Assembly (NCBI GenBank): GCA_965112735.1
Contig: OZ218958.1
Span: 1,798,001 to 1,862,000 of the forward strand
DNA length: 64,000 nt
From: Phaeosaccion multiseriatum
Lineage: Eukaryota; Protista; Ochrophyta, other classes
Reading direction: 5' to 3'
This document shows, in pieces, positions 1 to 57,857 of the stretch (positions are counted from its first letter, which is position 1; each line of letters starts with the position of its first letter). The notes under the pieces are model-generated. The model worked only from the letters and a program-made list of their open reading frames with translations, was not told the DNA's origin and did no database searches. The translations under genes were made by a program, and so were the position numbers.

Positions 1-1157
1 CCGCAGAGATGAGACGAGCGACGACGGCCTCGTGCCCATGGTGCGCTGCAATGTGGAGGGGTGAAGCGCCCTTGTTGGTCCTTTTGTCCACACGTGCTCC
101 CGCAGAGAGAAGCTTCTCCACCACGGCGTCGTGCCCTTCCTGACAGGCAATGTGAAGAGGAGTGACACCGTGGACGTCAGCCTTGTCGATGATGGCGTGG
201 GCCCTGATGAGCTGCTGTACGATGCCCGCATGCCCTTTGGCCGATGCCGCCAGAAGCGGAGTTCCCCCTACATCATTTGCGTGGTTCACATCCGCTTGGG
301 CTGAGATGAGGTGCCCTACAACAGAGCCATATCCGTTCTGAGAGGCAATCCAAATCGGAGAAAAGCCACGTTCCGCCACCAAGTCGACACTAGCACGCGC
401 CGTGAGCAGCTGCTGCACTGTCGTGGAGTGCCCCGTTCCTGATGCTGCAATCAAGGGAGTAACTCCTGTGTCATTCGCTTGGTCGACAGGGGCTCCCATG
501 TCCAACAGCCGCCTCACCACCTGATCGTGTCCGTTGCCGCTAGCGACTATCAACGGCGTGCGTTGAAAGGGTCCATCTCGGGCGCTGAAGGAGGCCCCTT
601 CCCGCAGCAGCAGGTCCATGACATCCAGCCGACCGTCTTGTGCAGCCACAAGCATAGCGGTATTTCCTTCTTCGTTGATAGGCTGATCCAAACTCGCTTT
701 ACCATGTTTGGCGATGAGCTTTCCAATCAGCGCTTTCACAGTGGGGAAGCTGTCTCCTCTGTCCAGGGCCTGCCCCAGCTGCCGCGCCTGGTGTTGTTGA
801 GCGAAACGAGAATGGGGGGGAGAGACGCATAAACATAGGCAATAAGGGATCAACAGGAAGCGGCTCACTGCTTCGATACGTGAGCATCCCACCGCAGCCA
901 TCGTATCCACAAAAACCACCCTCGCTTTTATTCACATCAGCCTCGTACTGTGCTTCAAACGCGGTGAAGAGACACGTACAGGGATCAGCAGAAAGCTGGT
1001 CACTGCATCGGAAGCGTTATGGGAGCTTCCTACTGCATCTGTCGTGTCTACCATCCTCCCCTGCCCCCTTGCGCTTCTCCTCTCTGAAGCACAGTGAGTC
1101 TTCCTGCAAGAGGGCGCTAGGTCGTACCTCGGGCGTTAACGTTGCCTGCTGCGCCAT
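1..1157 (-). CDS. Ankyrin-repeat protein, copy 1 (3' part outside the window)
   Basis: Exon 1 is 1157-1128 (MAQQATLTPE, donor GTACGA). Exon 2 starts at 787 (acceptor CACCAG) and is open to base 1. It contains repeated ankyrin motifs such as TPLIVASGNGH, TPLIAASGTGH, TPLLAASAKGH and TPLHIACQEGH. It is absent from the ORF track because it runs off the window. Confidence 0.9.
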
Positions 1158-1518
1158 GGTGAGCAAGCGGCCCCTCCCTTGAGACGGTAGTGCTGATAAG
1201 GGGCCCTTGGAGGGCTGCCTCACTACTGCGCAGTAGTCGGTTGCGCTGCTTGTCACGGCCTTCCGTGTGTGTGTATAAAGCTGTTGGAGGCCTCTGGAGG
1301 CATTGGGGGGCTTGAATGCTCTAATCACGGATCCCGATCTCCAGGGGGAGGCCCCTCTCCCTTTCGCTCTGCACCAAACCTTGGAAGAGAAAGATACGCT
1401 CGTGGGACATGGGGCACTGATGGCGTAGGCAGCACACGCAACACGCAGCCAGAGGAGGTGTAGTGGCTACGCGACACACGATCAAACAGACCGCAGCCAG
1501 CTCAGGGCAACGACAAGA

Positions 1519-4500
1519 ATGATCGACCAGGACACTTGCAAGGCCCATCCTTTGGAGGCCACTCTTGTGGCTGCTGCTGCGACGGCGGTTCCTGTTGCTG
1601 CTGCTGCCGCTTCTTCTCCATCCGTGCTGTTGCAGGGCGTGATGGGCTCATCCGCTGCACCACTTTTCTCCTCCGGTCCACTCAGCTTATCCCACGAGTC
1701 TCAAAAGGTGAGAAAAGGCTTTGCTGGAGGCTGTTGGTCATTCCCCTCCTCGCATCATGTCCGCTTCTACTCGCGGTACTTACCGGCCTAACCCTCTGCC
1801 TTCTTCCCACCCAAATCTCCGCCTCCCCTCCCTTCCACCTCTTTTCCTTCACGTCTTCCATCCACGCGGCTTCAAGGCCAAGCCTCAACCGGACTCCCAT
1901 GAGCGCCCCGGCTCCTCATCCGGCAGGGGGGGTGAAGGGGCTATCGCCCGAAGACGTCTTTGTGATGACTACCAAGAGACTGTGCCCCTCCTCCGCACTA
2001 GTCCAGTTCGCACAACGACTTCCCCAACCTTGATGCCGCTGGGAACATCCGAGAATGACGAGGGAGAAGGAGGGGTCAATGGAGGATGCGGGGCACAGAA
2101 CAAGGGGGGCTTTGGGGCAGCAGTAGCAACCGCTGGAGGAGAAGGAGCAGGGGGGAGCGGACGAGCAGCATCCGCGGCAGCAGCAGCACAAGCAGGAGCA
2201 GCAGGAGCAGTGGGAGGAGAAGGAGAAGGGCAAGCAGGAGCAGGAGCCGCTGTATGGACTCGTCTCCCTCCCGCGAGACCAGCGGAGCCCTTCACCTTCT
2301 CCCCCCTTCTCCTGCAGGGCCTGGGCATCAGCACTCCCTCCCCCGGTACGGCTCTGCCCTTCCAGCACCCCTGGACCGATTCCGAGGGCCTGGCCCCGTG
2401 GTGCACCACGAATGCGGAGTGGTGGCGACTGTGTGAGGGGTTCGTGAGCGAGCCAAGCTGTAAGCTCCCTGCTTTCGGCTAGATGCAGCCTCACCTCCTC
2501 TTTAGGAGAGCTCCACTCGCCCACTCGCTTCCCCTCCCCCGCCCACCCCACCTCCCATACCCCATATCCCACACCCCCACAGCCGCTCAAACTCGTTCAT
2601 TCTCCGGGCAGACAGGAGCTCCGCGTCGTCAGCGGGAGAAGGAAAGGGAGAAGGAGGGGGGGTGGGTAGCCGCATGCCGTCGCGAGGAGAGCATGTAGAC
2701 GAACTCGAAACCGAACTCGATGCCGATGCCGATGTCAATGTCGATGTCGAAGGCGCGCCCCTGGGGGAAGCAGGGGTGAGGGGTGCCTCCTTCTCTTTCT
2801 CCTCGTCCTCCCGCGCGGCCTTGTTGCAGCGCATGGGTCTCGCGATACCCAAGTTTGGCAGTGTGCAGCAGTATAAGACCTGCAGCGGGAGCTGGAGATG
2901 GTCAGGGGGGAGGAGGAGAAGGACTGCGCAGGAGGAGGGAGGACCGGAGCGACTAGAGGGCAGGGCTCTAGGCGGGGACAGACGACTCGGCCTGCCAGCG
3001 CTCGGCCTCGGATGGAGGGGGGCGCCGGGCAGACCCAGGGGGGGTAGGGTGAGCAGGTACGAAGGAAGCAAGTGGCTGTGGATGAAAGCTGAGGGCTGAA
3101 GGCTGAATGACAGCATGACAGCAGCTGTCAAGGCCGAGTGGGGATGGAGGGGGGTCGGTACCAGGATGTTGGGGGTGTTAGAAGTCGATATTTTGCTAGA
3201 CTGGTACCTACCCTCTGAATTCAGACCAGGAGGTAGACAAAGGCGCAAGGCGCCAAGGTGGATGATGAACAATTGAGCCCTTTTCGTCCCTCTTTCTCTC
3301 TGCCGCTCTATCTGTCGCTCTCGCTCTCTCTTATCTCTCCCTCTCTCGCTTTCTCTCCCTCCTTCTCCCTCTTTCGCCCCTCTCTCTCGCTCTCGTCACC
3401 TGCCTCTCTCTCCCACCGTTCCTCCCTCCCTCTCTCTCTCCTTTCCCCCCTTCCCCTCCCTCCGTTCGTGCGCCACAGATGCGCACCCCGCTCTGCTTCG
3501 ACTGCAGGCTAGGCAGCGCTCGCAGCGCCCGCGCCATGAAGAGGCGGAACGAACAGCGGCAGCAGCAGCGAGAGGCGGCAAGGGCGGCAGAGAGGGAGGT
3601 CTGCTGATGCGGGGGGCGGCGGCAGTTCTGCAGCAACAGCGGCAATCCGGCCAAGCCTCTGCGGTGAGGGAGGGGAGGGAGGGAGGGAGGGAGGGAGGGA
3701 GGGAGTGAGGGAGTGAGCGAGTGGGAGTGAATGGGTGCGGGAGGAAGTGAGGGAGCGAGAGCGGGGGAGTGGGGGAAGGAAGAAGGATAGCAGCGCCGCC
3801 AGCATGGCAGTGAGGTCTCGCAACAGAGAAGACAGCGACGTGTGTATTGAATATGAGTAATTCATGCCCTCGCACCCCGTACCCGGTCCTGTGTGTGCTC
3901 TGCTCCTCTGCTGCTCTGCCGCAGCATTCATGTCTGCTCGATCCTGCTCTAAGCGGCTCTATCCCACTCCTTTCTACTCCCCATCTCTCATCGCAAAGGC
4001 CAAGCTTCGGAGTCGTCGGGAGAAGCAGCAGCAGCGGCGAGCAGCCACCATCGCGGCGAAGACGTTGTGGGATCCAGCACGGCCAGAGGAGGAGCAAGGC
4101 CGGTGACGGCTGTTGCTGCTGTACCACCAACTGTTGTATCTCAAGACGATGTGCTGGAGTGGGGTAAGCAGATCGAGATGGCACTGGACAGGAGGGTAGA
4201 GCTCATCGAAGGCGGCAAGATGTTTGCCGTCAATGGAAGGTGAGGGGGGGGGAGGGGTGAAGGGGTGAGGGAGGGAGGGAGGGAGGGATATGGCAGAGGA
4301 TAGCGTATGCTATGGATCCAACGCACGAGGGGGTGTACCGACGAAACGATGGGGTGACTCCACGCAGCACGATGGTGCGCTCTGCTCTACCCCTCATGAC
4401 ATACGCTTCCTCCCTCCCTCCTTCCTTCCTTCCTTCCTTCCTTCGTTCGTTCGTTCGTTCGTTCGTTCCTTCCTTCCTTCCTTCCTTCCTTCCTTCCTTC

Positions 4501-5282
4501 CTTCCTTCCTTCCTTCCTTCCTTCCTTCCTTCCTTCCCTTTTTCCTTCCAGCCTTCCTTCCTTCCATCCTTCCTTCCTTCCTTCCCTTTTTCCTTCCAGC
4601 CTTCCTTCTTTCCTTCCTTCTTTCCTTCCACTCATCGACTTAGCGTTCACTCTGACGACCTTTCCTCCCCCTCTCTTCTCTCGCTCTCCACCCTCTCCAC
4701 CCTCTCCTCCCGCTCCCCTCTGTCCACCCGTTTCCCCCTTTCTCCCCTGCTGCCAGAGAACAAGTACGCATCATCGAAGAATGTCCTCCCGCCGCCGCCG
4801 CCGGAGCGCCTTCCCTGCACAGAGACCGTTCCAGATCGGTACAACAGCTTCGACCTGCCCCCTTGGACTCAGCGCGGAGCGGTCTGCGATCGTTCCGGGC
4901 CTCGCGATCCCCCGGGGCGGAGAGGAGGGGCCGGGAGGAGGATACTTTGGGTGGAGAGCCAGGGGGAGGGGGGAGCATGAGCCATCGGAGCGTTCCCAAT
5001 CTCGCCATTGGGGGGGGGGAGAGAAGCTCTGTCTCTGTGTCTGTCTATGGCTCCAACACGCAGGAGGAGGGGGAGTGGGGCGTCACAAATGGCTTCAGTA
5101 TCACCAACACCAGGGGCGGGAGAGGGGGTGGGAGGGGAGGACAAGGCATTGGACTTGGGTATCAGCAGAGGCCCATTGGACGCCCCGTCACAGGGACGGG
5201 CAGGAGAGAGAAGGAGGAGGTATCAGTGGTGTTAGTGGTGGTGGTGGCCGGGTTGGTGCTGGGCCGGCGTCAGCCCCTGTGA
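1519..5282 (+). pseudogene. Decayed multi-exon gene of unknown function, copy 1
   Basis: GT-AG exons at about 1519-1707, 1877-2459, 2583-3048, 3479-3663, 3999-4239 and 4757-5282, with compatible junction phases. Internal frame changes occur at the G-run near 2660, a 1-nt indel near 2875 relative to copy 2, and within exon 4. The product is low-complexity with no recognised domain. Confidence 0.55.
4410..4628. repeat. (CCTT)n/(CGTT)n intronic microsatellite
   Basis: Seen directly. The equivalent tract in unit 2 (about 11052-11115) is much shorter. Confidence 0.9.
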
Positions 5283-6367
5283 GTCGGGTGGGAGGGGTGA
5301 AGGCGGGGGTAGCGGGGGAGAGGAGGGAGGGACGCCGCGAGGGAGGGTAGCAGGAGGAGGGGCAAGAGGAGGGGTAGGAGGAAGAGGATGAGGAAGAGGA
5401 GGATGAGGACGAGGCGGGCACGGCAGGTAGACGAGGAACCCATCCTCACTCACTCACTCACTCGCTCACTCACCCGCGTATTCACTTTCTAGCTCTATTC
5501 TATAAGCGAAGTCCAGAGAGCAAATGCAATACACATACTTCTCCAAGGTCGAGAGGCAAGCAGCAAGATTCACAGATGGATATAATGGCGGCACTCCGTA
5601 TCCACTGCCCCCCCGCTGCCCTCTTCCGTCCGCTGGGAAACATGGCTCACCCGTACGCTTCTATCTGATCCCCACTTGATGTTGCCGACGGCAGGGCTCT
5701 CTTCACACGAGGGGGCACAAATAGAGACAAACAAGTAGCAGAGCACTGGGGAAGTCACTGAGCACCAGCTTATCTTGTTTACGTGAACTTTCGTAGTAGC
5801 AAAGTGTTTCATCAGTCACTGAGTACGCATAGACTCGATTGGGCGGAGCTTGCCTTTTGCCTCCACACGAGCACAACGCCCGCCTCGGACCTGGCGTTCA
5901 CCTTCGCCGTTGTGTATTTACCCATAAACACCCTTCTCTAAGCTACGACTCTTTGCTGTGCCCGCATGCCCCACCCAGGAAGGAAGCCCTCGGCCTCTAT
6001 CCATCGGGATTACACTCTCTTCCCTTCAAACGAACTGACCTTCCCTCCCCCCCCTCCCCTCCAGCTATACACTACATCCATTGGTCCCGTAAGCTACGAT
6101 ACACACGTGACTCCCCTCCCCCACCGGACCCCCTACCTCCTGTAATCCGCTCCTCTCTGCGACAGAGCATCGCAATCACTTCACCGCTCTTACACCAAGC
6201 CAGTGTGCCGTGGGCTGTCTCTCTCTCGCATCGCATCCTCATGTACAGGCTCACTCGCATGGGCTGCATGGCTGCTGGTGCAAGCGAGCAAGCTGGAGCG
6301 GTACTGTTTCGTTGCCAAAGTCGTCGTTGCCCCTACCAGCCCCACCTCACACATCCCTCCTGCTCGC

Positions 6368-7845
6368 TCAGCCCATCTCCTCCACCATGCTCTCCCACGT
6401 CTCGCTCCCCACACTCCAGGGCCTCTCCAGCGGCAGGATTCCGCTCTCCTTGCCGAAGGTCGGATCAGTCCTTCGCATGAGGTCCAGCGCGGTTTGGGAC
6501 CGGAAGAAGGCTGCTGCCGCCTCCATAAGTCGCTGCTCAATCTCGGCCTCGTCATTATGCAGCCGTGCCCCAGCCAAGGCCTTGCCCACTGAAGCACCGG
6601 CCGAGAGGAGCTGCCGCGCAGTCCCGTGGTGGTCTCTGAAGATGGCAGCAAGGAGGGGAGTCATACCGTTCGATGACGTGATATCAATGGGGGATCCCGC
6701 AGAGATGAGACGAGCGACGACGGCCTCGTGCCCATGGTGCGCGGCGAGGTAGAGGGGTGAATAGCCATTGTTGGTCCTTTCGTCTACACGTGCTCCCGCA
6801 GAGAGAAGCTTCTCCACCACGGCGTCGCGCCCTGCCTGACAGGCATGGTGAAGAGGAGTGACACTGTGGACGTCAGCCTTGTCGATGCTGGCGTGGGCCC
6901 TCATGAGCTGCTGTACGATGCCCGCATGCCCATTGAACGATGCCTGATGAAGCGGAGTTCTCCCTTGATTATCTGCGTGGTTCACATCCGCTAGGGCTGA
7001 GATGAGGTGCCTTACAACAGAGCTATGTCCGTTCTGAGAGGCCATCTGAATCGCAGAACAACCAGGTTCCGCCACCAAGTCGACACTAGCACGCGCCGAG
7101 AGCAGCTGCTGCACTGTCGTGGAGTGCCCCCTTCCTGATGCCATAATATCAAGGGAGTAACTCCTGTGCCACTCGCTTGGTCGACAGGGGCTCCCATGTC
7201 CAACAGCCGCCTCACCACCTGATCGTGTCCTTTGCCGCTAGCGGCTATCAATGGCGTCATTCTAAAGGGCCCGCCTCTGGTGCTGAAGGAGGCCCCTTCC
7301 CGCAGCAGAAGGTCCATGACATCCAGCCGACCGTCTCCTGCAGCCACACGCATTGCGGTATATCCTTCTTCGTTGATATGCTGATCCAAACTCGCTTTAC
7401 CATGTTTGGCGATGAGCTTCCCAATCAGCGCTTTCACAGTGGAGAAGCTCTCCCCTCTGTACAGGGCCTGCCCCAGCTGCCGCGCCTGGTGTTGTTGAGG
7501 GAAACGAGAATGGGGGGGAGAGACGCATATACATAGGCTATAAGGGATCAACAGGAAGCGGCTCACTGCTTCGATACGTGCGCATCCCACCGCAGCCATT
7601 GTATCCACAAAACACTCCCTCGCTCTGTTCTCTTCAAAAAGTCCATTTGTTTTCTCAAAAGCGGGGGGAGAGGCGCATACACCGGATTCAAAGGGATCAA
7701 CGGAGAGCTTTCCACTTCGTCGACACGTGAGCATCCCACCGCAGCTATCGTATCCGCAGAGGGACCTATTCTTTCCGATGGACACCTTCTCACACAGGAG
7801 GGCGCTAGGTCGTACCTCGGGCGTTAACGTTGCCTGCTGCGCCAT
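6368..7845 (-). pseudogene. Ankyrin-repeat protein, copy 2, with a 2-nt frameshift
   Basis: Exon 1 is 7845-7816 and exon 2 is 7485-6368 (1118 nt, not a multiple of 3). An extra AT near 7147-7149 (GCCATAATATCAAGG) splits ORFs 7012..7944 and 6368..7144 inside TPLI-MASGRGH. This could also be a sequencing error. Confidence 0.8.
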
Positions 7846-8201
7846 GGTGAGCAAGTGGTCCCACCCTTGAGACGGTAGTGCTGACAAGGGGCCCACAGAG
7901 GGCTGTCTCGCTACTACGCAGTAGTCGGTTGCGCTGTCTGTCACGGCCCTGCCCGTGTATAAAGCTGTTGGAGGCCTCTGGAGGCATTGGGGGGCTTGAA
8001 TGCTCTAATCACAGATGCCGATCTCCAGGGGGAGGCCCCTCTCCCTTTCGCTCTGCACCAAACCTTGGAAGAGAAAGATACGCTCGTGGGACATGGGGCA
8101 CTGATGGCGTAGGCAGCACACGCAACACGCAGCCAGAGGAGGTGTAGTGGCTACGCGACACACTATCAAACAGACCACAGCCAGCTTATGGCAACGCAAG
8201 A

Positions 8202-11200
8202 ATGATCGACCAGGACACTTGCAAGGCCCATCCTTTGGAGGCCATTCTTGTGGCTGCTGCTGCGACGGCGGTTCCTGTTGCTGCTGCTGCCGCTTCTTCT
8301 CCATCCGTGCTGTTGCAGGGCGTGATGGGCTCATCCGCTGCGCCACGTTTATCCTCCAGTCCACTCAGCTTATCCCACGAGTCTCAAAAGGTGAGAAAAG
8401 GCTTTGCTGGAGGCTGCTAGTCATTCCCCTCCTCGCATCATGTCCGCTTCTACTCGCGGTACTTACCAGCCTAACCCTCTGCCTTCTTCCCACCCAAATC
8501 TCCGCCTCCCCTCCCTTTCACCTCTTTTCCTTCACGTCTTCCATATCCACGCGGCTTCAAGGCCAAGCCTCAACCGGACTCCCATGAGCGCCCCGGCTCC
8601 TCATCCGGCAGGGGGGGTGAAGGGGCTATCGCCCGAAGACGTCTTTGTGATGACTACCAAGAGACTGTGCCCCTCCTCCGCACTAGTCCAGTTCGCACCT
8701 CGACTTCCCCTGTCTTGATGCCGCTGGGAACATCCGAGAATGACGAGGGAGAAGGAGGGGTCAATAGAGGATGCGGGGCACAGAACAAGGGGGGCTTTGG
8801 GGCAGCAGTAGCAACCGCTGGAGGAGAAGGGGCAGGGGGGAGCGGACGAGCAGCATCCGCGGCAGCAGCAGCACAAGCAGGAGCAGCAGGAGCAGTGGGA
8901 GGAGAAGCAGGAGCCCCTGTATGGACTCGTCTCCCTCCCGCGAGACCAGCGGAGCCCTTCACCTTCTCCCCCCTTCTCCTGCAGGGCCTGGGCATCAGCA
9001 CTCCCTCCCCCGCTACGGCTCTGCCCTTCCAGCACCCCTGGACCGATTCCGAGGGCCTGGCCCCGTGGAGCACCACGAATGCTGAGATGAGTGGTGGCGA
9101 GTGCGTGGGGGGTGCGTGAGCGAGCCAAGCTGTGAGCCCCCTGCTTTCGGCTAGATACAGCCTCACCTCCTCTTTAGGAGAGCTCCACTCGCCCATTCCC
9201 TTCCCCTCCACCGCCCACCCCACCTCCCATACCCCATATCCCACACGCCCACAGCCGCTCAAACTCGTTCATTCTCCGGGCAGACAGCAGCTCCGCGTCG
9301 TCAGCGGGAGAAGGAGCGGGAGAAGGAGAGGGGGTGGGTAGCCGCATGCCGTCGCGAGGAGAGCATGTAGACGAACTCGAAACCGAACTCGATGCCGATG
9401 CCGATGTCAATGTCGATGTCGAAGGCGCGCCCCTGGGGGAAGCAGGGGTGAGGGGTGCCTCCTTCTCTTTCTCCTCGTCCTCCCGCGCGGCCTTGTTTCA
9501 GCGCATGGGTCTCGCGATACCCAACTTTGGCCGTGTGCAGCAGTATGAAGAATTGCAGCGGGAGCTGGAGATGGTCAGGGGGGAGGAGGAGAAGGACTAC
9601 GCAGGAGGAGGGAGGACGCGAGCGACTAAAGGGGAGGGCTCTAGGCCGGGACAGACGACTCGGCCTGCCAGCGCTCGGCCTCGGATGGAGGCGGGCGCCG
9701 GGCAGACCCCGGGGGGGCAGGGTGAGCAGGTACGAAGGAAGCGAGTGGCTGTGGATGAAAGTTGAGGGCTGAAGTCTAAATCACAGCATGACAGCAGCTG
9801 TTAAGGCCGAGTGGGGATGGAGGGGGGTCGGTACCAGGATGTTGGGGGGGCGAAGGCGCAAAGGCGCCAAGGTGGATGATCAACAATTGAGTCCTCTTCG
9901 CCCTCCTTTCTCTCTGTCGCTCTCGCTCTCTCTGATCTCTCTCTCTCTCGCCTTCTCTCCCTCCTTCTCCGTCTCTCTCCCCTCTCTCTTTCTCTCGTCA
10001 CCTGCCTCTCTCTCCCACCGTTCCTCCCTCCCTCTCTCTCTCTCCTTTCCTCCCTCCCCCTCCCTCTGTCCGTGGGCCACAGATGCGTACAGCGCTATGC
10101 TTCGACAGCAGGCCAGGTAGCGCTCGCAGCGCCCGCGCCATGAAGAGGCGGAACGAACAGCGGCAGCAGTAGCGAGAGGCGCAGAGGGGGCAAGGGCGGC
10201 AGAGAGGGAGGGCTGCTGATGCGGGGGGCGGCGGCAGTTCTGCAGCGACAGCGGCAATCCGGTCAAGCCTCTGCTCTGCGGTGAGGGGAGGGAGGAAGGG
10301 AGGGAGAGAGTTGGTGATACAGAGGGAGGGAGTGAGGTAGAGAGAGCGGGGGTGGAAGTGTGAGGGAGTGAATGGGTGCGGGAGGAATCGAGGGTGAGAG
10401 CGGGGGGGGGAAGAAGGAAGAAGGATAGCAGTGTCGCCAGCATGGCAGTGAGGTCTCGCAACAGAGAAGACAGCGACGTGTGTATTGAATGAGTAATTGA
10501 TGCCCTCGCACCCCGTACCCGGTCCCACTTGTGCTCTGCTGCTCTGCTGCTCTGCTGCTCTGCCGCACCATTCATGTCTGCTCGATCCTGCTCTACGCGG
10601 CTCTATCCCACTCCTTTCTACTCCCCATCTCTCATCGCAAAGGCCAAGCTTCGGAGTCGTCGGGAGAAGCAGCAGCAGCGGCGAGCAGCCGCCATCGCGG
10701 CGAAGACGTTGTGGGATCCAGCACGGCCAGGGGAGGAGCAAGGCCGGTGACGGCTGTTGCCGCTGTACCACCAACTGTTGTATCTCGAGACGATGTGCTG
10801 GAGTGGGGTAAGCAGATCGAGATGGCACTGAACAGGAGGGCAGAGCTTGTCGAAGGTGGCAAGATGTTCGCCGTCAATGGAAGGTGAGGGGGGAGGAGGG
10901 GGAAGGGGTGAGGGAGGGAGGGGGTTGGGGATATGGCAGAGGATAGAGTATGCGATGGATCCAACGCACGAGGGGATGTACCGACGAAACGATGGGGTGA
11001 CTCCCCGCAGCACGATGGTGCGCTCTGCTCTACCCCTCATGACATACGCTTCCTCCCTCCCTCCCTCCTTCCTTCCTTCCTTCCTTCCTTCCTTCCTTCC
11101 TTCCTTCCTTCCTTCAAATCATTGACTTAGCGTTCACTCTGACGACCTCCTCCCCCCCTCTCTCCTCTTCTCCACCCTCTCCACCCTCTCCTCCTCCCCC

Positions 11201-11747
11201 TCCTCTCTGCCCACGCTTCCTCCCTTTTCTCCTCAGGGAACAAGTACGCTCATCGAAGAAGATCCTTCCGCCGCCGCCGCCGGAGTGTCTTCCTTGCACA
11301 GAGAACGTTCCAGATCTGTACAACCGCTTCGACGCGCACCCTTGGACTCCGCGCGGAGCGGTCTGCGACCGTTCCGGGCCTCGCGATCCCCCGGGGCGGA
11401 GAGGAGGGGCCGGGAGGAGGATAGGTTGGGTAGAGGGCCAGGGGGAGGGGGGAGCATGAGTCATCGGAGCGTTCTCAATCTCGCCATTTGGGGGGGGGGG
11501 AGAAGCTCTGCCTATGGCTCAACATTCAGGAGGAGGGGGAGTGGGGCGTCACAAATGGCTTCAGTATCACCAACACCAGGAGAGGGACGGGGCTGGGAGG
11601 GGAGGGCAAGGTATTGCACTTGGGTATCAGCAGAGGCCCATTGGAAGCCCCGTCACAGGGACAGGCAGGAGAGAGAAGGAGGAGGTATCAGTGGTGTTAG
11701 TGGTGGTGGTGGCCGGGTTGGTGCTGGGCCGGCGTCAGTCCCTGTGA
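8202..11747 (+). pseudogene. Decayed multi-exon gene, copy 2
   Basis: Collinear with 1519-5282 but with different lesions: a stop at 9117-9119 after an indel, an in-frame TAG at 10118-10120, and frameshifts in the last exon. Confidence 0.55.
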
Positions 11748-12826
11748 GTCGGGTGGGAGGGGTAAAGGCGGGGGTAGCGGGGGAGAGGAGGGAGGGACGC
11801 CGCGAGGGAGGGTAGCAGGAGGAGGGGCAAGAGGAGGAGTAGGAGGAAGAGGATGAGGAAGTGGAGGAAGAGGCAGGCACGGCAGGTAGACGGGGAACCC
11901 ATCCTCACTCACTCACCCACTCACTCATGCACCAAGTATTTACTTTCTAGCTCTATTCTATAAACGAAGTCCAGAGAGCAAATGCTATACACATGACTCT
12001 CCAAGGTCGAGAGGCAAGCAGCAAGATTCACAGATGGATACAATTGGGGCGCTGCGTATCCACTGCCTCCCCGCCACTCTCTTCCGTCCGCTGGGAAACA
12101 TGGCTCACCCGTACGCTTCTATCTGATCCCCACTTGATATTGCCGAGGGCAGGGCTCTCTTTGACGAGGGGGGCGAAATAGAGACCAAAAAGTAGCAGAG
12201 CACTGGGGAAGTCACTGAGTACTAGCTTATCTTGTTAGTTTACGTAATCTTTCGTAATAGCAAAGTGTTTCATCAGTCACTGAGTGCGCATAGACTCGAT
12301 TGGGGGGAGCTTGCCTTTGGCCTCCACACGAGCACAACCCCCGCCTAGGACCTGGCGTTCACCTTCGCCATTGTGTGATTAGCAGGGCAATACCCTTCTC
12401 TAAGCTGCGACTACTTGCTGTGCCCGCATGCCCCACCCTGGAAGCCCTCGGCCTCTATCCATCGGGATTACACTCTCCCCCCTTCAAACGAGCTGACCTT
12501 CCCTCTCACCCCCCCCCTCAAGCTGTACACTTCATCCATTGGTCCCGTAAGCTACGATACACACGTGACTCCCCTCCCCCCCCGGACCCCCTACCTCCTG
12601 TACTCCGCTCCTCTCTGCGACAGGGCATCGCAATCACTTCACCGCTCTTCCACCAAGCCAGTGTGCCGCGGGCAGTCTCTCTCTCTCTCTCGCATCCTGA
12701 TGTACAGGCTCACTCGCATGGGCTGCATGGCTGCTGGTGCAAGCGAGCAAGCTGGAGCGGTACTCTTTCGTTGCCAAAGTCGTCGTTGCCCCTACCAGCC
12801 CCACCTCGCACATCCCTCCTGCTCGC

Positions 12827-14328
12827 TCAGCCCATCTCCTCCGCCATGCTCTCCCACGTCTCGCTCCCCACACTCCAGGGCCTCTCCAGCGGCAGGATTC
12901 CGCTCTCCTTACCGAAGGTCGGATCAGTCCTTCGCATGAGGTCCAGCGCGGTTTGGGACTGGAAGAAGGCTGCTGCCGCCTCCATAAGTCGCTGCTCGAT
13001 GTCCCGCCCGAGCTGCCACCGCCGTGCCCCAGCCAAGGCCTTGTCCACCGAAGCATCGGCCGAGAGGAGCTGCCGCGCAGTGCCGTCGTGGTCTGTGAAG
13101 ATGGCAGCAAAGAGAGGAGTCATACCGTTTGATGCCGTGGTATCAATGGGGGATCCCGCAGAGATGAGACGAGCGACGATGGCCTCGTGCCCATTCTGCG
13201 CGGCAAGGTAGAGGGGTGAACAGCCATTGTTGTTTGCCCGTTTGCCCACACGTGCGCCCGCAGAGAGAAGCTTCTCCACCACGGCGTCGTGCCCTTCCTG
13301 ACAGGCAATGTGAAGAGGAGTGACACCGTGGACGTCAGCCTTGTCGATGATGGCGTGGGCCCTGATGAGCTGCTGTACCATGTCCGCATGCCCATATCGC
13401 GATGCCATCAGCATCGGAGTTCTCCCGAGATTATCTGCGTGGTTCACATCCGCTTGGGCTGAGATGAGGTGCCTTACAACAGAGCTATGTCCGTTCTGAG
13501 AGGCAATCCAAATCGGAGAAAGCCCCTTCTTGTCGGCCAAGTCGACACTAGCGCGCGCCGAGAGCAGCTGCTGCACTGTCGTGGAGTGCCCCTTTTCTGA
13601 TGCAATAATCAAGGGAGTAAGTCCTCTGCCACCCGCTTGGTCGACAGGGGCTCCAATGTCCAACAGCCGCCTCACCACCTGATCGTGTCCGTTGCCGCTA
13701 GCGGATATCAATGGCGTGCTTCCAACGGGTCCATCTCGGGTGCTGAAGGAGGCCCCTTCCCGCAGCAGAAGATCTATGACATCCAGCCGACGGTATATTG
13801 CAGCCACATGCACAGCGGTAAGTCCTTCTTCGTTGATAGGCTGATCCAAACTCGCTTTGCCATGTTTGGCGATGAGCTTGGTAACCAGCGCTTCCACAGT
13901 GGGGAAGCTCTCCCATCTGTCCAGGGCCTGCCCCAGCTGCCGCGCCTGGTGTTGTTGAGGGAAACAAGAATGGGGGGGAGAGACGCATTTCATAGGCTAT
14001 AAGGGATCAGCAGGAAGCTGCTCACTGCTTCGATACGTGAGCATCCCACCGCAGCCATCGTATCCACAAAACACTCCCTCGCTCTGCTCTCTTCGAAACA
14101 CAAGAGTCCATTTGTTTTCTCAAAAGCGGGGGGAGAGGCGCATACACCGGATTAAAAGGGATCAACGGAGAGCTTTCCACTTCGTCGACAAGTGAGCATC
14201 CCACCGCAGCTATCGTATCCGCAGCAGGACCCCTCGCCTTGCTCTACGCTTTCCAAAGAACACCTTCTCACAGGAGGGCGCTAGGTCGTAGGTCGTACCT
14301 CGGGCGTTAGCGTTGCCTGCTGCGCCAT
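12827..14328 (-). CDS. Ankyrin-repeat protein, copy 3 (intact, about 382 aa, 8 repeats plus caps)
   Basis: Exon 1 (14328-14299, MAQQATLTPE) joins exon 2 (13945-12827) in phase 0. There are eight G-x-T/S-P/A-L-x-x-A-x-x-x-G-H type repeats. No signal peptide or TM segment is visible. Confidence 0.92.
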
Positions 14329-14564
14329 GGTGAGTAAGCGGCCCCTCCCTTGAGAGGGTAGTGCTGACAAGGGGGCTACAGAAGGCCCTCTCCCTGCTGC
14401 GCCTGCTGTGCAGTAGTCGGTCGCTCTGCCTATCACAGTGCTCCCCCGCTCTCTGATTGTAAGTTTATGGAGGCCTCTGAAGGCATTGGGAAAGTGATCC
14501 GATTTCACAGATACCGATCCCAGGGGGGGGGGGCGTCATGCCCCTCCAAACTTACCACCAACTT

Positions 14565-14774
14565 TCGAGCGACTAGAAGGGGGAGCTCTACTACTAGGCG
14601 GGGACAGACGACTCGGCCTACCAGCGCACGTCCTCGGATGAAGGGGGAAGACGAGAAGACCCAGGGGGGGGTAGGGGTGAGCAGGTATGGAAGGAAGGAA
14701 ATGGCAAGAAATGAAAGTTAAGGGCTGAAGGCTGAAAGACGGCGGCTTTTGTCAAGGTCGAGTGGGGGTGGAGG
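14565..14774 (+). pseudogene. Remnant of exon 3 and following intron of the decayed plus-strand gene
   Basis: GGCGGGGACAGACGACTCGGCCT...GGGTGAGCAGGTA matches about 2945-3150 and 9620-9822, but is more diverged than those two are from each other. Confidence 0.75.
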
Positions 14775-25600: not shown

Positions 25601-28600
25601 TTCTTGGGTCACAACGTTTCGTTTTCTGAAAATGTCGCTGAGGTGAGTGAGTCGATTTTGTGTCGATATCAAGGAAGTGAGTCAATCCTGATATCAAATT
25701 TAGGGCGCGTGAGGAGTGACGGTGCGCAGCGCCTTAGATGAGTATCGGACTGCTTTATTGTCACTTTTTGTAGTGTAGAGCAGTAGGAAATTCTCTCGCT
25801 CTCCCTGTCTGCCCACCTGCCTGTCTACCTGCCTGCCTACCCATATGCCTGCCTAACTGCCTCCTAGCCCATATGCCTGCCTGCCTGTCCCTCTGTCTGC
25901 CTGCCTGTCTGCCTGCCTGCCTGTCTGCCTGCCTGCCTGTTTGTCTGCCTGCCTGCCTGCCTGCCGTGTGACCTGCCCTGCGCCTTGCTCTCTCGCATCC
26001 CTCCCTCCACCTACACTCTGACCTGCTCTCACGCCCTCGCCTCTTTTGCGGTATATCATCGTACTGCTCCTCTTTCCGCTCCATGACTGGGCTGCTCGGG
26101 CTGCATGCGGCTTATCCAGATTGATGTAAGTGCTTGCCTCAGTACTCACCCCCTCGGTCGGGCGCAAGGGGCATGATTGGGCATGATTGGGTGGTTGAGA
26201 GGCTGCTTTCTCCCTCCAACCCACCCCGCCCATCCTGAGAGCTCACTCAGGTCTTACGGCTTTCTTCCTGGACCTCAAGACAATGCTGTGTACCTTCCTT
26301 GCCATCAAATGAATGAATGGCTCCTCGAAATGCTCAACCCTATCTAATCAAGCTGCTGCTGCTGCCAAATGCTCTGCTTGCTGCTGCTGCTGTTGGGCTT
26401 CTCCTGTTACTTTCTGCCACACACCACAAGGGAGGGGCCATCGCCCTCTTGCGCAGCTGCACTGCCACCTTCGCGGGAGGCACTTTGTTCACTGGGAATG
26501 TTGCGGTAGGTGTTCGTTACAGAACGGGTTATGCAACCTTACGCCGAGTAGTGATACACCCTTGTTAGCACTCGAGTGGTGATTTTTGTCTCTCATCTTG
26601 ATCATCACACATTGCTTTTCCTTCCTTTCACACATCTTACTTACGTATGCTTCGTAAGGTAGCACGTCATGGGACGGGCCACCAAGCTGCCTACACACTC
26701 ACTTACACGCACACACGGCTGTCTCGCGATTCTCAACACCAACTTGCTGCTTTGCCTGGTCCCCAGGGGGGCGAGGGAGGAGCCATCTATGCTTACCCTA
26801 TCGTGGACGGTTTCTTGGCCTTCGGCAGCAGCGGCGGCGCAAGGACAACCTTTGTTGGTAACACGGCGGACCTCAACGGTGGCGCCATGGCCGTGGGGGT
26901 TGCTCTCAACAGCACTCTCACCCTCTCCAATTTGGACTTTGTTGCCAACACCGCGGAACAGAATGGTGGCGCCATGGTCCTTCTGGGGGTGGTGTATGAC
27001 GACTCTGTGGAGGAGAGAGCGCCGAATCTGACGATTATTCAGAAGGCCAGGCTTGTCGACTGCACCTTTACCGACAATGTGGCACAGAGGGGGGACGGCG
27101 GTGCTCTGTACCGGGAGGTGGACAATGCCTTCTTCTTGGGAGCAAGAGATACGTTCTTTTCTCTCGACGTCGCAGAGGGCGTGTTTGACACGGTGCTGGA
27201 CACCACAACCTTTTCCAACAATCGCGCGGGAGGGAGAGGAGGTGCTGTCTTCTTGGACGACCCGAGTGTGTTTATCGGAGACGTGCCGCAGAGCGAGGTG
27301 TCTGTGAGAGCCTTTCTTGTGGACAACCAATTTCTTCGCAATTCGGCCCGGGGGGGGCAGGGCGGTGCATTGTATGTGAGGGCGAGGCAGCGCCTCTCCG
27401 GCGTCGTTACGGAATCCCGGGCGGTAACAACGGTCGTTAACACCCTTTTTGAGCGTAACGAGGCGCCACTCAGTGACGGGGGCGCCGTGACGGTGCTGGG
27501 GCTGACGGACTTTCATGTGAGAAACACGTCCTTCGTGGCAAATGCAGCAGGGGATCGAGGAGGAGCCATCAGAGTGGAGATGGGAGACGATGTCCTGACG
27601 TTGACGATTGACGAGTCGGTATTCAGAGATAACGAAGCGGCTCAAGACGGTGGTGCGGTGATGATAGCGGACCCTCAGACCGAGATGAGGGTGGCCAATT
27701 GCACCTTCTCTTCCAACACTGCCGGTGGTGTAGGGGGGGGCGTCTTTCTAACAGAACGTTCCAGGGCAAGCGTCGCGCGGAGCAGCTTTCGAGACAACCG
27801 CGCAGCGAGCGGGGCATGCCTGTATGCTTCTGAAGGCGTTACTGTCACGGTCGGATTCGGCTCGAGCTTCGTTGAGAACGTCGCCTCTTCCCGGGGGGCG
27901 GCTCTGGGGGGAGTCACGACAGTTGCCAATGTCAGCTTGAGTGAGGACTGCACCTTCGAGGGCAACACGGCATCTTGCTGCACCCCTCCTGCCCAGGCGG
28001 ACGGAAAGCCGAGGTGGGTAGTGTCTGGAGGAGAGGGAGGAGGAGGAGGAGGAGGAGGAGGAGGAGGAGGAGGAGGAGGAGGAGGAGGAGGAGGAGGAGG
28101 AGGAGGAGGAGGAGGAGGAGGAGGGGGAGGAGGAGGAGGAGGCAGGGAGGAGCAATTCCGGTGCCCTGATGTGGACTTTGGCAGCGACGTGGTGGACTGC
28201 TGCGGCAACCAAGAGTACTTTGAAGACAGCAGGGCCTACGAATGCACACCATGCGGGGAGGGCTTTGCATGTGCCACTCCCTGTCTCAATGCCTCGTCGT
28301 CATCATGTGTTGACCGCTTGGGCGCCTTGAAGTCGGACCTTGAGCTCACGCCGGGCTTTTGGCGTCCTCGGTCCGAGGAGGATCTTGATGTGCGAGAGTG
28401 TCTCGAGGAGACAGCATGCAAGGGTGGCGCCACCCCAGGCCAGTATTGCGCCCCTGGCTTTCAGGGCCCCTTATGTGCAGTCTGTGCCCCCGGCTACGCG
28501 CAAGGTGTGGCATTCGCGTGTCACCGCTGCAACGAGGGGCTGCGCAAGGGGGCGTTGGCAGCAACTGTGGTCGTCCTCCTCTTGCTCGTTTTGCTCTACG

Positions 28601-30874
28601 CGCTCTTCACTGCCCATCTCTGGGGGTGCCTGTCCAGCAGTAGCGGGTGGGGCAGCAAGCTCCAGGCGCTAATCGATGGTGTCGTACCTCCAGCACTGAG
28701 AAGTAAGCTGGCAAAGGTAAGGTGGCGCCGCCTGAGGACTCCTCTGGTCATGTACCAAATCATCTCGTCTTTTGTGGAGGTCACCGAGTCGAGGCTTCCG
28801 ACGGCCTACACAGGGTTCCTCAACGTCTTTTCGTTCCTGACGTTGGACGTAGGAAGGTTCCTCTCAGCGGGGTGCGTCGGTGACTTTGACTTTTACGACC
28901 GCCTACGTATAATGACTCTGGGACCCGTTTTTGTGATGGGGGTCCTGGCTTTGAATCGGGCGGCCTTGGTCAAGCGCCAAGACATGCGCTTGTTCCTTGG
29001 TGGCGGCAGGGAGAGGGTGGGAGGAAGCAACGAGGCCGTCAGCCAGACAAGGTCCGGTATGCCAGCCGATGAAGACGACAGGGAGGCCGTAGCAGCAGAA
29101 GTTGGTACGGTAAAGCGTCGCCAGCATGGAGCGAGGCCGATGGCGGCGGCACCCATCAGCAGCGTCGGTACTGCGATTCGGGGGTGGAGAAAGGAGGAGA
29201 GAATACCACCAGGGCACAGCGAGAGTACCTTCGCGACCAACAACAACGATCAGGACAGCTTGGCGGAGGGGGGGGGGGGGGGGGTCGACGGCGGGGGGAA
29301 GGGGGAGGAGGAGAAGGAGGAGGAGGAGAAGGAGGAGGAGAACGATGAGGAGGAGGAGGAGGAGGAGGAAGAGGAGGAGCAGCAGGAGGAGGAGGAGGAG
29401 GAGGCGATGATGGTCACAGACCCGGCCAACACGCTGATGTACTTGATGCTTCTCTTCTCCTTCGTCATCTACTCCACCGTCTCCACGACGGTATTCCAAA
29501 CCTTCGCCTGCGACAATGGGGCAGAGGACGGCGAATCATACCTCATAGCCGACTACAGCATCTCGTGTGGCACGCCCAGGCACACCAGGTATCGCATATA
29601 CGCGGCCTTGATGATCCTCGTCTATCCAGTGGGGATTCCTTTGACTTATATATGGCGGCTGAGGGGGTCGCAGGGGGCCATTGCGCGCAAGAGGGGGGAA
29701 GAAGATGAGCAGCAAGCAGCAAATGAGCAAGCCGAGGAGCCTCCCCTCCTTACTAATGACGGAGATGCCAGGGGGGGGGGCGGGACAGTGGTGCCAGCAG
29801 CAGCAGCAGCAGCAGCAGTAGCGGCAGCTGCAAGCACAGAACGGAGTGCGGTGCCCGTGGATGAGTTCGAGGAGAGCCGTGTGTACAAGAGAGTCATGGC
29901 GAACGAGTTCCTATGGACCTCTTACAAGACCAGCCACTACTACTATGAGGTAGTAGAGTGTGCCCGACGCATGCTGCTCACAGGTTGGTGACGACACGGA
30001 AGAGGGTGGTGGAGGGGAGGGAGTTCAGAGCATGATGTCACGCCCTTCTTCTTTGTGTGCCATACACAGGTTTGCTATAGCTTGGGCTCAAGCTTGCTCC
30101 AGCTAGTTCCAGTTGTCTTGTGAAGTTGTGTTTTCCTCCGTTTGTCTCTCGTCTTGCTTGCTCCCACTCACTTGCTCGCTCGCTCGCTGGCTTGCTCACC
30201 CAACTATCAACAGGTGCTCTTGTGTTCATCCTTCCCAACACGGCTGGGCAGGCAGCGGTGGCGTGCACGTTTGCCGTCTTGTCTTTGGCAGTATTCACAG
30301 TCCTCTCTCCCATGTGGAACAACTCGGAGAGCATCATGTACATTATCAGGTGTGTTGTATAGACATGTTAGAGGCATACGGGCAAGGGCAGGGGCAAGGG
30401 GACGGCAGGGAGGGGCACAGGGAGGAGACCGCTCCAGACAAAAGGGAGGTGAAACTGATGACCGATGCTCTTCCTCGTACATTGTACTTTCGTCTCTCTC
30501 GCCCCTCCCTCAGCAACTGCATCATCTTCGGGACCATGTTTTCAGCGTTAATCATCAACGCCGACTTCTCCGACGAGAGAGACACGAGCCAAAGATACAT
30601 TGGGTATCTTCTCATCTTTCTCAACGTGCTTGTGCTCACGGCCACGTTCGGCTTCTTGGGTAGGCAGGTGTATAGCGAGTGGAGACATTGGAAGAAGATT
30701 CCATCCACTCCTCCTTCTACACCTTCTTCGAAGAAGAAGACAGCTTCCGACGATGTGCCCGCAGCGACGAATACGTCTGACTCAGACTTGGGACGGAATC
30801 TTGATGATGAGCACAACACCTGGGAGCGGGTGGTCGCAGCCTCGGTGGAAGCTCGGCGCAGGAGTATCGGCTAG
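22613..30874 (+). CDS. Polymorphic-membrane-protein (GGAI/FxxN) repeat, Cys-rich, multi-pass membrane protein
   Basis: Exons 22613-22933, 23186-23521, 24178-24258, 24796-24876, 25388-25642, 26431-26505, 26767-29983, 30214-30349 and 30514-30874 join in frame. The product has a signal peptide, many GGA(I/V/M)...FxxNxA repeats and the Cys-rich segment GFWRP...YCAPGFQGPLCAVC. The TM domain contains FQTFACD, YLIADYSISC and YYYEVVECARRMLLTG, typical of algal/protist PMP-like receptors. Confidence 0.9.
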
Positions 30875-36391: not shown

Positions 36392-38659
36392 TCATCGATC
36401 GGAGCTGCCGCCGCCGTCGCTGCTGCTGTCTCCCTCGTCAACAATGTACTGCGGCACTCCTTCTCCTTCGTCGTCGGCGCTCCCGCCTCGCCCACCGCTG
36501 CTCACTTGGTATCCATCGCTCCCCCCGGCCTTGCCACTGCTGCTGCTGCTGCTGCTGCTGCTGCTCGGTGGTCCTCCACGCGGGGTGTAGCCTAAGGAGG
36601 TCTCGATAACATCCACTTCGACGAACGACTGCTGCTCAACCTCCGCCTCGACATCCTCTTCCTTCTCCCCTTCCTCGTCAGTATCGCACTCGCGCCATCC
36701 TACCTTCCCTCTAAGCCCCCGCCCCCACTCCGCATCCTCATCCTCTTCGTCCTCATCCTCCTCATCGTTCTCGTCCACCTCCTTTGTATCGTCCTGCTCC
36801 TCCCGCCGCTGCTTCTGCTCCGCCTCTGCACGGCTCTTTGCCTCCTCGTAGTCCGCCTGAAGTGCCATCCGCCTCCGCTCCACCTCCCTCACCTGCTGGG
36901 CATGTTGTTCATCCATCTGCTTCGCCAGCATCTCCGCCACCGCCTCGCTCGTCTTTCTCCGCCCGCCGCCTCCTCCCTCTCCACCACCACCATTACCACT
37001 CTTGCTCTCCCCTTCCACACCCTTCTCGGAAGCAGTCGACGCAGTCGAAGCAGCCACAGCCGCCGCCAGAGCCGCTGCCGCCGCACCTTCCCTCACGATG
37101 AGGACAGGCGTCCTTGTCCTCTCTTGCTCGTCTGAAGTGATCGAAGTGGGGCCTCTCCTCCACTCCTCCACTGCCCTGCGAAACGCTTCATGCTCAGCCG
37201 CCTCGTCAAGGGCGTCGTCTGCCGCTGGAGCTCGTTTGGCTGCCTCCGCCGCGCCCCCCCCTCCTCCTCCTCCTCCTCCTCCTACCTCACCGCCGCCGCC
37301 GAAGGGGTTACGCCACATGCCCTTCTCCTCCTCCCTACTCTGTTGCTCCCTCTCTTCGTCGTTGTTGCTCCTCCTCCCTGCATCACCATCACCGGCGACA
37401 CCTCCCAACGACGGCACCTCGCGCATCTCCTCCTCCTCCTCCCCCTCCTCCCCCTGGTTATCCTCCTGTCCCACCCGCTCAATCACCACGGGCCCTCCGT
37501 TCCTCCACTCTTCAACTGCGTGCTTGAAGCTCTCCTGCGCCGCTCGTTCATCGTAGTCTCCGTCCGCGAGGTTGGCAGGCATGCCGCCGGGGGGGGCACT
37601 CACCTCGTTCTGGGACAAGGGCTTCAGTCGAGACCAGTGCTGCTGCTGGTGGTGTTGCTGCTGCTGCTGCTGCTGGTGGTGGTGGTGGTGGTGGCTGGTG
37701 TCGCTTGAACTACTGCTACTACTGCTGCTGGTGCTGCTTCTACTAGTGTTGTTGCTGTTGTTGCTGCTACTGTTACTAGCCTTGTTCTCAGCCCCTCCGC
37801 CGAGAGCCATGGGAGCCCTCTTCGCCGCTGTAGAGGGCCGCCCATTTCTCTTCAAGTCCTCAATGCCTCGAAGCACAATCTTCCTGTGCGCAAGAATGAC
37901 CACTTGCATATAATCCAGATCGTCTAGCCCTACCTCTAGCAGAATGGGCCCCGAGATCTCGTTCTGGTTGAACACGTGGCGGTATTGAGGCAGACTGAGG
38001 TGCTGCTCCAGCCAATCCAAGGTGTCGGCTACACACCAGTGCATCACGTCTTTGTTTGCGTAATCTACACAGCTCTTGCTGCTTCCAACTGAGTTGCCGC
38101 CAGGTCCGTCCACGGAAGGACCCTGCTGCTGCTGCTGTTGCCGCTGGTATTGTTGTTCCTGTTGTTGTTGCTGCTGCGGAGGTGGCGGGGGAGGTTCCCG
38201 ACGCGCCATGTCCACCTTTGCTTGCGCTGCTGCCACTGCCATCTGCGCCCTCCGAACCGCCCCACTCCCACCTCCACCGCTGCTCTTCTTGCCGTCCAGA
38301 TGCTGGTCCCACGGCCGCTGTGCACCTCTCTTACTGCTCCCGCTTCTGCTCTCCCTCGCCTGCGCGAGTGCCCTTTCGGCATGCTTTTGCTTGACTTCCT
38401 TCGAATAACGGGTTATGGATCCCTTGTCCGGCCGAGCGCTCTTCCAGCGGCTCCCGTTCGCCTGTTGCTGCTGCTTCTGCTGCTGATCCTGCCTATTATC
38501 TTTGTCCTCATCCATTTGGATGCGGAGCTTTTGAAGCCTCTCCTCCATCCGACTCGTCTCTTCCGCCATTCTGGCGCTCTCGGCCATTTTGTAGCCCGAC
38601 TGTCCTGGCAAGAGAGGCGGTGCGCCGAAGCCTGCTCGCTTCTTCGCCGGGCTGGTCAT
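36392..38659 (-). CDS. SAM-domain protein, 755 aa, single exon
   Basis: SAM signature WCVADTLDWL...LSLPQYRHVFNQNEISGPILLEVGLDDLDYMQV...HRKIVLRGIEDL. The rest is low-complexity or coiled. Confidence 0.85.
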   Translation of the reverse strand: MTSPAKKRAGFGAPPLLPGQSGYKMAESARMAEETSRMEERLQKLRIQMDEDKDNRQDQQQKQQQQANGSRWKSARPDKGSITRYSKEVKQKHAERALAQARESRSGSSKRGAQRPWDQHLDGKKSSGGGGSGAVRRAQMAVAAAQAKVDMARREPPPPPPQQQQQQEQQYQRQQQQQQGPSVDGPGGNSVGSSKSCVDYANKDVMHWCVADTLDWLEQHLSLPQYRHVFNQNEISGPILLEVGLDDLDYMQVVILAHRKIVLRGIEDLKRNGRPSTAAKRAPMALGGGAENKASNSSSNNSNNTSRSSTSSSSSSSSSDTSHHHHHHQQQQQQQHHQQQHWSRLKPLSQNEVSAPPGGMPANLADGDYDERAAQESFKHAVEEWRNGGPVVIERVGQEDNQGEEGEEEEEMREVPSLGGVAGDGDAGRRSNNDEEREQQSREEEKGMWRNPFGGGGEVGGGGGGGGGGAAEAAKRAPAADDALDEAAEHEAFRRAVEEWRRGPTSITSDEQERTRTPVLIVREGAAAAALAAAVAASTASTASEKGVEGESKSGNGGGGEGGGGGRRKTSEAVAEMLAKQMDEQHAQQVREVERRRMALQADYEEAKSRAEAEQKQRREEQDDTKEVDENDEEDEDEEDEDAEWGRGLRGKVGWRECDTDEEGEKEEDVEAEVEQQSFVEVDVIETSLGYTPRGGPPSSSSSSSSSSGKAGGSDGYQVSSGGRGGSADDEGEGVPQYIVDEGDSSSDGGGSSDR

Positions 38660-41588: not shown

Positions 41589-41619
<31 letters not shown>

Positions 41620-57812: not shown

Positions 57813-57857
<45 letters not shown>

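Follow-up and report, generated by a model that had tools for sequence, protein, structure and literature searches.

Tandem ankyrin-repeat genes of the alga Phaeosaccion multiseriatum vary chiefly at the predicted binding groove

The ankyrin sensor domains of fungal NOD-like receptors, those of Podospora Pa_3_8560 and its relatives, show positive selection and polymorphism at the inner helices of their concave face and at the hairpin (Dyrka et al. 2014, PMC4986451). In stramenopile algae, fast-evolving repeats have been proposed as recognition modules in the LRR-ROCO (Zambounis et al. 2012, PMC3341825) and NB-ARC-TPR (PMC11378527) genes of brown algae; these genes are described as carrying ROC-COR or NB-ARC domains and as diversifying by the shuffling of single-repeat exon cassettes. 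Lineage-specific ankyrin expansions have been mentioned for Ectocarpus, in a report without an analysis of surface variation (10.1101/307165). Here we describe tandem genes for ankyrin-repeat proteins in a stretch of 64,000 nucleotides from the ochrophyte alga Phaeosaccion multiseriatum (GenBank assembly GCA_965112735.1, contig OZ218958.1, positions 1,798,001 to 1,862,000 of the forward strand), which we call the window and within which all positions below are counted. We consider it likely that the three gene copies at its left end are recent duplicates in which amino-acid change has been focused on the groove of the ankyrin domain, that is, that the groove has undergone diversifying evolution. 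Among described systems, the nearest case is the ankyrin sensor domain of the fungal NOD-like receptors.

When the first 16 kb of the window were compared with themselves by blastn, a head-to-tail duplication that recurs about every 6.5 kb was found: positions 1-4472 match 6697-11115 at 89.4% identity, 4557-8035 match 11049-14530 at 88.2%, 1-1307 match 13156-14490 at 82.4%, and about 14566-14774 match 2947-3150 at 79%. The window holds the right-hand end of a tandem array of units of about 6.5 kb, each with one ankyrin gene on the minus strand. Unit 1 (1-6696) is cut by the left edge of the window, unit 2 (6697-13155) is complete at about 6.46 kb, and unit 3 (13156-14530), the rightmost, is partial, being limited to the gene and some 0.5 kb of upstream sequence. 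Homology stops near 14530; a short fragment of spacer follows at 14566-14774, and then unrelated sequence. The units are recent duplicates, with a silent and intergenic divergence of 0.06-0.10. Gene copy 1 (1-901, minus strand) consists of the N-cap and repeats 1-7, has a conserved ATG at 901 and matches the Pfam ankyrin family at E=1e-42; it is open for 275 codons before its frame leaves the window at the left edge, so that only the N-terminal part is present. Copy 2 (6368-7599, minus strand) is full length in a three-way DNA alignment but frameshifted. Copy 3 (12827-13993, minus strand) is an intact open reading frame (ORF) of 388 amino acids, from MKCVSPP to the stop, that matches PF00023 in 7 stretches (E=3.7e-52) and PF12796 (E=6.9e-51); copies 1 and 2 match these families too. 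An earlier note on this DNA had taken the copies to be tandem ankyrin paralogues and the array to run on past the left edge; the repeated unit and the ankyrin matches in all three copies bear out the former claim, and the truncation of copy 1 the latter.

The protein is predicted to fold as a canonical ankyrin solenoid, in which 8 distinct repeats stand between an N-cap and a long C-terminal helix, with a short disordered tail at the end. AlphaFold2, given copy 3 aligned to 33 further sequences, of which 32 were database hits and one was copy 1, returned a model with a mean pLDDT of 91 and a pTM of 0.84, in which a helical N-cap (residues 12-50) is followed by eight regular helix pairs, by helices at residues 316-325 and 330-356, and by a disordered end. 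The long C-terminal helix, residues 330-356, is predicted at a pLDDT of 83-93 and the disordered tail at 41-55. The eight repeats (residues 56-315; 13049-13828, minus strand) lie in one uninterrupted ORF and one exon, and their pairwise identity within copy 3 averages 36% with a maximum of 48%. When the model was compared with the PDB by Foldseek, DARPins (designed ankyrin repeat proteins) and ankyrin-R/B came out on top (E of about 1e-16, TM score up to 0.73), with nothing on the tail. Whole-protein searches of a public collection gave generic ankyrin proteins at 27-42% identity, covering the repeats only; that collection lacks this genome's own proteins, so that no paralogues were obtainable from it. 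In all of these searches copy 2 was used as separate pieces and the putative exons 1 and 2 described below were kept unjoined.

In an ankyrin domain, the concave groove is lined by residues at the hairpin tip and on the inner helix. DARPin libraries of the Binz and Plueckthun design are randomized at positions 2, 3, 5, 13, 14 and 33 in DARPin numbering. We placed the copies in a 33-residue register anchored on the T/S-P motif, with T as position 4, in which the DARPin positions correspond to 33, 1, 3, 11, 12 and 31. The earlier note had claimed that the copies differ at the surface randomized in DARPins while their scaffold stays constant, and the residues on which it based this claim are all present. 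The constant strings GHDQVVRRLLD, GHSTTVQQLL and DAVVEKLLSAGARV are found in the copies, and in the order of copies 1/2/3 the variable sets read N-ML-QDG / Y-MR-GDG / L-VH-IYR in repeat 1, FQR / FRM / VGS in the loop of repeat 2, NDT..A..GT / SGT..M..GR / GGR..I..EK in repeat 3, VAER / VAEP / ADKK in the loop of repeat 4 and LLA..AK / LHQ..FN / MLM..RY in repeat 5. Its hand count of about 73 differences and 1 indel between copies 2 and 3 over about 372 amino acids comes to 74 differences over 384 aligned codons, with one codon indel, on our recount. Across the 8 repeats, register position 12 varies in 7, positions 3 and 8 in 6 each, positions 1, 7 and 32 in 5 each, position 11 in 4, and positions 30 and 33 in 3 each; every remaining position varies in 0-2. 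The hypervariable positions of copy 3 are 32, 33, 1 and 3 at the hairpin tip and 7, 8, 11 and 12 on the inner helix. For the DARPin set, which was fixed a priori (register 31, 33, 1, 3, 11, 12), 27 of 47 columns are variable compared with 42 of the 216 other repeat columns (Fisher odds ratio 5.6, p=5e-7). With positions 7, 8 and 32 added, an extension that was partly data-driven although all three are known groove positions, the count is 43 of 71 columns against 26 of 192 (Fisher p=2e-13). The concentration of change at the surface is thus far beyond chance.

The spacers of the array provide a neutral reference against which this change can be set. Over 3348 bp of aligned spacer, units 1 and 2 differ by 0.059 substitutions per site, and over 1705 bp units 2 and 3 differ by 0.095 (intergenic K of 0.061 and 0.102, respectively). 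The gene-wide silent rate by the Nei-Gojobori method (dS, 0.073-0.096) agrees with these values. By the same method the non-synonymous rate (dN) is 0.27-0.39 at the surface and 0.039-0.053 in the scaffold. The non-synonymous proportion at the surface exceeds the intergenic rate with an odds ratio of 3.5-5.8 (p=5e-7 to 1e-14), and even a conservative count that allows one event per changed codon gives a ratio of surface to intergenic rate of 2.2-3.4 (p=6e-4 to 2e-8). We also fitted a fixed-site codon likelihood model in our own implementation (GY94-type, F3x4, a 3-taxon tree, silent branch lengths shared across partitions), in which the strict DARPin set gave a surface omega of 5.5 (likelihood-ratio test, LRT, against omega=1, 42.5, p=7e-11) and an omega of 1.05 for the rest, and the extended set a surface omega of 5.85 (LRT 57.7, p=3e-14) and an omega of 0.67 for the rest. 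The 2-bp insertion of copy 2 was removed for these counts, within the codon alignment only. Codons at the surface that differ only synonymously are not in excess (1/33, 0/29 and 3/35, against about 5% elsewhere). Groove positions therefore change 2-6 times faster than neutral DNA, while the helix-2/linker scaffold and the tail are nearly constant. According to the earlier note, its proposal would be refuted if omega at the variable sites did not exceed 1 or if the substitutions were evenly spread; the surface omega is instead 5.5-5.9, the substitutions are unevenly spread, and its proposal of diversifying evolution at the predicted binding surface is upheld.

Downstream of the repeats, the variable and the constant parts of the protein lie side by side. 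A block of seven residues after repeat 8 is wholly different between copy 3 (RWQLGRD; 13001-13021, minus strand) and copy 2 (LHNDEAE; about 6542-6562, minus strand), and looks, from the letters, like a block replacement beside a near-identical tail. The constant C-terminal module that follows (12827-13000, minus strand), predicted as the long helix and then the disordered tail, is nearly the same in copies 2 and 3, which depart from each other at 2 of its 57 residues and at 4 of 171 nucleotides (2.3%). A search with the C-terminal 74 residues against 1.84 billion representative proteins gave no credible relative, and the ESM Atlas gave no feature at 0.9 or above for the tail, with features of at most 0.85 that were uninformative. 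Three matches of the tail at E of about 1e-6 were rejected as chance matches driven by repeats, each in multiple stretches of long repetitive proteins with unrelated Pfam domains or none. By these comparisons the tail appears to be an orphan.

Copies 2 and 3 each carry a small indel. A 2-bp insertion in copy 2 that the earlier note did not mention (about 7146-7149, minus strand; GATATT where copies 1 and 3 have GATT) breaks the frame within repeat 3, and a stop follows 48 codons later, so that the gene is seen as two overlapping ORFs, 6368-7144 and 7012-7944. As assembled, copy 2 is not an intact gene. Because the original frame, read past the frameshift, stays open for 258 codons, the lesion would be either very recent or an assembly error. 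In copy 3 a 1-bp deletion falls in a putative GT-AG intron of 80 nt (13946-14025, minus strand), which is 81 nt long in copies 1 (788-868) and 2 (7486-7566). This candidate intron has a GTGAGC donor and a polypyrimidine tract followed by a CAG acceptor, is in phase 0, and would separate a 33-nt first exon encoding MAAVGC(S/A)RIEA, which starts at an ATG common to all copies (901, 7599 and 14058), from a frame that resumes at ARQLGQAL. In copies 1 and 2 the 81 nt also read through in frame; in copy 3 the deletion breaks this read-through and creates the ATG of the 388-codon ORF. The small intron, which we infer from the sequence only, would render the deletion harmless.

Four sequencing runs from one sample, the kind of which is not on record (X1-X4), cover the whole of 7050-13050, both gene and spacer, in contigs of about 100 bp, most of which have an identity of at least 99%. 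Since the gene and the spacer are covered alike, these runs are probably genomic DNA, from the source sample of the assembly. None of their contigs lacks the 2-bp insertion of copy 2, the site of which is covered; this support is weak and non-independent, and the runs neither contradict the frameshift nor confirm it independently. Contigs that track copy 2 as far as 7141 and then carry copy-1-like letters reflect scaffold common to paralogous sequences. The summed contig depth over 12678-13050, at the C-terminal coding part, is tens of times that over the spacer at 7854-8657, and depth is also raised in the spacer pieces 8859-9461, 10467-10667 and 12276-12476. This depth is not a copy number, but its pile-up over the coding and C-terminal parts is a hint that the genome has many related copies at other places.

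Apart from the gene, each unit consists of about 5 kb of low-complexity spacer, in which we recognized no second gene: the ten longest spacer ORFs (140-303 amino acids) gave zero Pfam matches. A (CTTC)n microsatellite in the spacer has 56 copies in unit 1 (4406-4629) and 17 in unit 2 (11049-11115); tracts resembling it occur at 60870-61108. The 300-500 bp immediately upstream of the genes (946-1307, 7647-8035 and 14112-14530) differ at a proportion of 0.19-0.27, compared with 0.06-0.10 elsewhere in the spacer, and the upstream region of copy 1 includes a stretch unlike copies 2 and 3. Elsewhere in the window, an ORF of 1114 codons (26647-29988, plus strand) matches the Chlamydia PMP repeat and right-handed beta-helix families and is adhesin-like, which is unusual in a eukaryote. 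Other long ORFs lie at 36395-38659 (minus strand), 57370-60528 (plus strand) and 40146-42032 (plus strand). The domains among them are a SAM domain, the C-terminal half of a protein kinase, and the end of a 2OG-Fe(II) oxygenase, below the Pfam cut-off; the half kinase domain is followed by low-complexity sequence, which suggests upstream exons.

Several points weigh against the reading of recent duplicates with a diversifying groove. We have three copies only, one partial and one frameshifted, which gives site models little power, and the fixed-site test presupposes a single tree, a single silent rate and mutation of one nucleotide at a time. The lineage-specific differences are clustered (49 runs against 66.7 +/- 4.6 expected; 0 of 5000 shuffles as low, p<0.0002), and many surface codons, 12-15 of 62-71 per pair, hold 2-3 changes. 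Together with the seven-residue block, these features suggest that part of the variation arrives in short blocks, perhaps through micro-conversion from other family members or through multi-nucleotide events; either process breaks the assumptions of the codon model and can make omega too high. The copies could then be mosaics, built by short-tract gene conversion or shuffling from older, diverged family members, and the high omega would be long-standing diversity moved between copies instead of recent point change. Such a mosaic would also fit the Nei-Gojobori dS of 0.14-0.24 at surface codons against 0.05-0.06 in the scaffold, and the contig depth that hints at further copies. We hold it to be possible but rather doubtful, because unchanged scaffold codons interleave with the variable ones every 1-3 codons, which would need tracts a few bases long or donors with an identical scaffold, and because blastn finds the three copies and no donor in the window. 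Moreover, silent differences are not in surplus at surface codons whose amino acid is unchanged, which argues against a pure reading of old diversity over a homogenized scaffold. Since the differences cluster by lineage, short-tract exchange with other paralogues probably contributes to the variation; this alters the source of the variation and not the conclusion that the groove has diversified. Some relaxation is present as well, since the scaffold is weakly constrained (omega 0.67-1.05) and consensus residues are altered in all three copies (P5A, G2S and H14R in copy 2, H14Y in copy 1, G13R in copy 3). No RNA run was found to contain the locus, so that there is no expression evidence among the runs searched, and the reading of X1-X4 as DNA counts on the same side, as does the outcome of the Pfam search, which found no partner domain outside the repeats. 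Such points, and the frameshift of copy 2, could be taken to mean that the array is simply decaying under relaxed constraint, with pseudogenes whose differences mark the residues that an ankyrin fold tolerates changing. We judge this improbable: relaxation lifts omega to 1 and not to 5-6, the surface exceeds the intergenic rate 2-6 fold, the open frames of 388 codons in copy 3 and 275 codons in copy 1 are kept, copy 2 has remained free of stops past a lesion that would be very recent if real, and the tail differs at 2.3% of its nucleotides against 9.5% for the intergenic sequence.

Two further explanations concern how, or for whom, the variation arose. The extreme focus of the changes and the frequency of multi-nucleotide changes per codon are what a targeted mutational mechanism acting on surface codons might leave, either a template system like that of a diversity-generating retroelement or programmed hypermutation, but we give this almost no credence. 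The substitution spectrum at surface codons is unbiased, with the six classes at 6-12 each and no adenine-specific pattern, so that a retroelement-like mutational bias is rejected; Pfam finds no reverse transcriptase domain among the ten longest spacer ORFs; blastn gives the three gene copies and no separate template repeat; and the differences are germ-line ones, between fixed paralogues. Poxviruses, giant viruses and Wolbachia have expanded ankyrin families (see also the discussion in PMC4986451), and parts of the spacer too have multi-copy contig depth, as might be seen if the array were a selfish or virus-derived element, such as an integrated giant-virus region, encoding host-manipulating ankyrin proteins in place of host receptors. 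This is very improbable in our view, given that no viral or transposon domain is seen in the ten longest spacer ORFs, that the GC content of the array is 0.58-0.63 throughout and similar to that of the remaining window, that the best database matches are generic ankyrin proteins aligned over the repeats only, and that the C-terminus has no F-box, PRANC or SOCS box by Pfam. Whatever the source of the variation, the locus is a small, partly decaying array of a family that has diversified at the groove.

We propose the following course for this diversification. New copies would arise by unequal crossing-over of whole units, after which the groove would be diversified by positive selection on point changes and by short-tract exchange with family members, so that each paralogue would come to grip a different ligand, while the constant C-terminal module would serve a common output or docking function. 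Birth and death may be ongoing in the array, because copy 2 is newly frameshifted. The likeliest setting, we conjecture, would be conflict or non-self recognition, for example of virus, parasite or symbiont factors or in allorecognition. That the genes form a recognition repertoire is a tentative proposal, which we regard as a real possibility short of probable, and the immune or antiviral receptor role raised in the earlier note is a conjecture, as is the cytosolic location that it proposed. The protein itself gives few further clues. Apart from ankyrin families, Pfam finds nothing in the 388-aa ORF at E up to 0.01, with no NACHT, NB-ARC, ROC-COR or signalling domain; NACHT and NB-ARC are likewise not found in the ten longest spacer ORFs, though there may be a distant upstream exon. 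No F-box, PRANC, SOCS-box or BTB domain is found outside the repeats at the same threshold, though sequence alone could miss a very divergent box, and the copies have no obvious signal peptide, the 5' end of the gene model being uncertain. A broader proposal, which seems to us unlikely, is that the locus is one arm of a genome-wide germ-line repertoire of stand-alone ankyrin binders, with many families and dozens to hundreds of genes, that would be the alga's main variable recognition system. Under that proposal ankyrin grooves would do what LRRs do in plant NLRs or in lamprey VLRs, and ligand binding would be coupled to an output through the constant orphan module of C-terminal helix and tail. 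If the copies have indeed been selected for different binding specificities, they would strengthen the case that ankyrin grooves, like LRR, WD40 and TPR surfaces, can act as a diversified recognition module, here without a NOD domain. They would then point to a recognition or conflict system that is still unexplored, in an algal lineage that has been little studied, and the constant orphan tail would be a handle toward the output pathway. The locus also offers a clean neutral reference, since about 5 kb of its spacer can be aligned, and its frameshifted middle copy gives a snapshot of birth and death.

Compared with known systems, the genes share the position of their variation with some and differ from all in their architecture or mode of change. 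In the ankyrin adaptors of ubiquitin ligases (ANK-F-box/PRANC, ASB SOCS-box and ANK-BTB proteins) an F-box, PRANC, SOCS-box or BTB domain adjoins the repeats, whereas Pfam finds none of these here. The brown-algal LRR-ROCO and NB-ARC-TPR genes, as described, differ in that the present genes encode eight repeats in one exon, have no signalling domain, and vary by substitution or micro-exchange between whole-gene duplicates. With the fungal NOD-like receptors the likeness is closer, since the same register positions vary in both. The fungal proteins, however, also have an N-terminal effector domain and a NACHT or NB-ARC domain, whereas the copies here are ankyrin only by Pfam; and within a fungal protein the repeats share at least 85% identity, are shuffled and are polymorphic in number, whereas here the identity is low (mean 36%), the number is fixed at 8 repeats and the diversity lies between tandem genes. 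The likeness to DARPins extends from the predicted structure, for which they are top matches, to the layout of the variation: a constant helix-2/linker framework carries variation at the hairpin tip and first helix, with enrichment at the very positions randomized in the libraries. Unlike DARPins, these proteins are a natural family whose repeats are not consensus-identical; the inner-helix positions 7 and 8 and the hairpin position 32 also vary, position 31 is little used (2/8), and a constant C-terminal helix and tail are added. If the copies have been selected for different specificities, they would be a natural counterpart of DARPin libraries.

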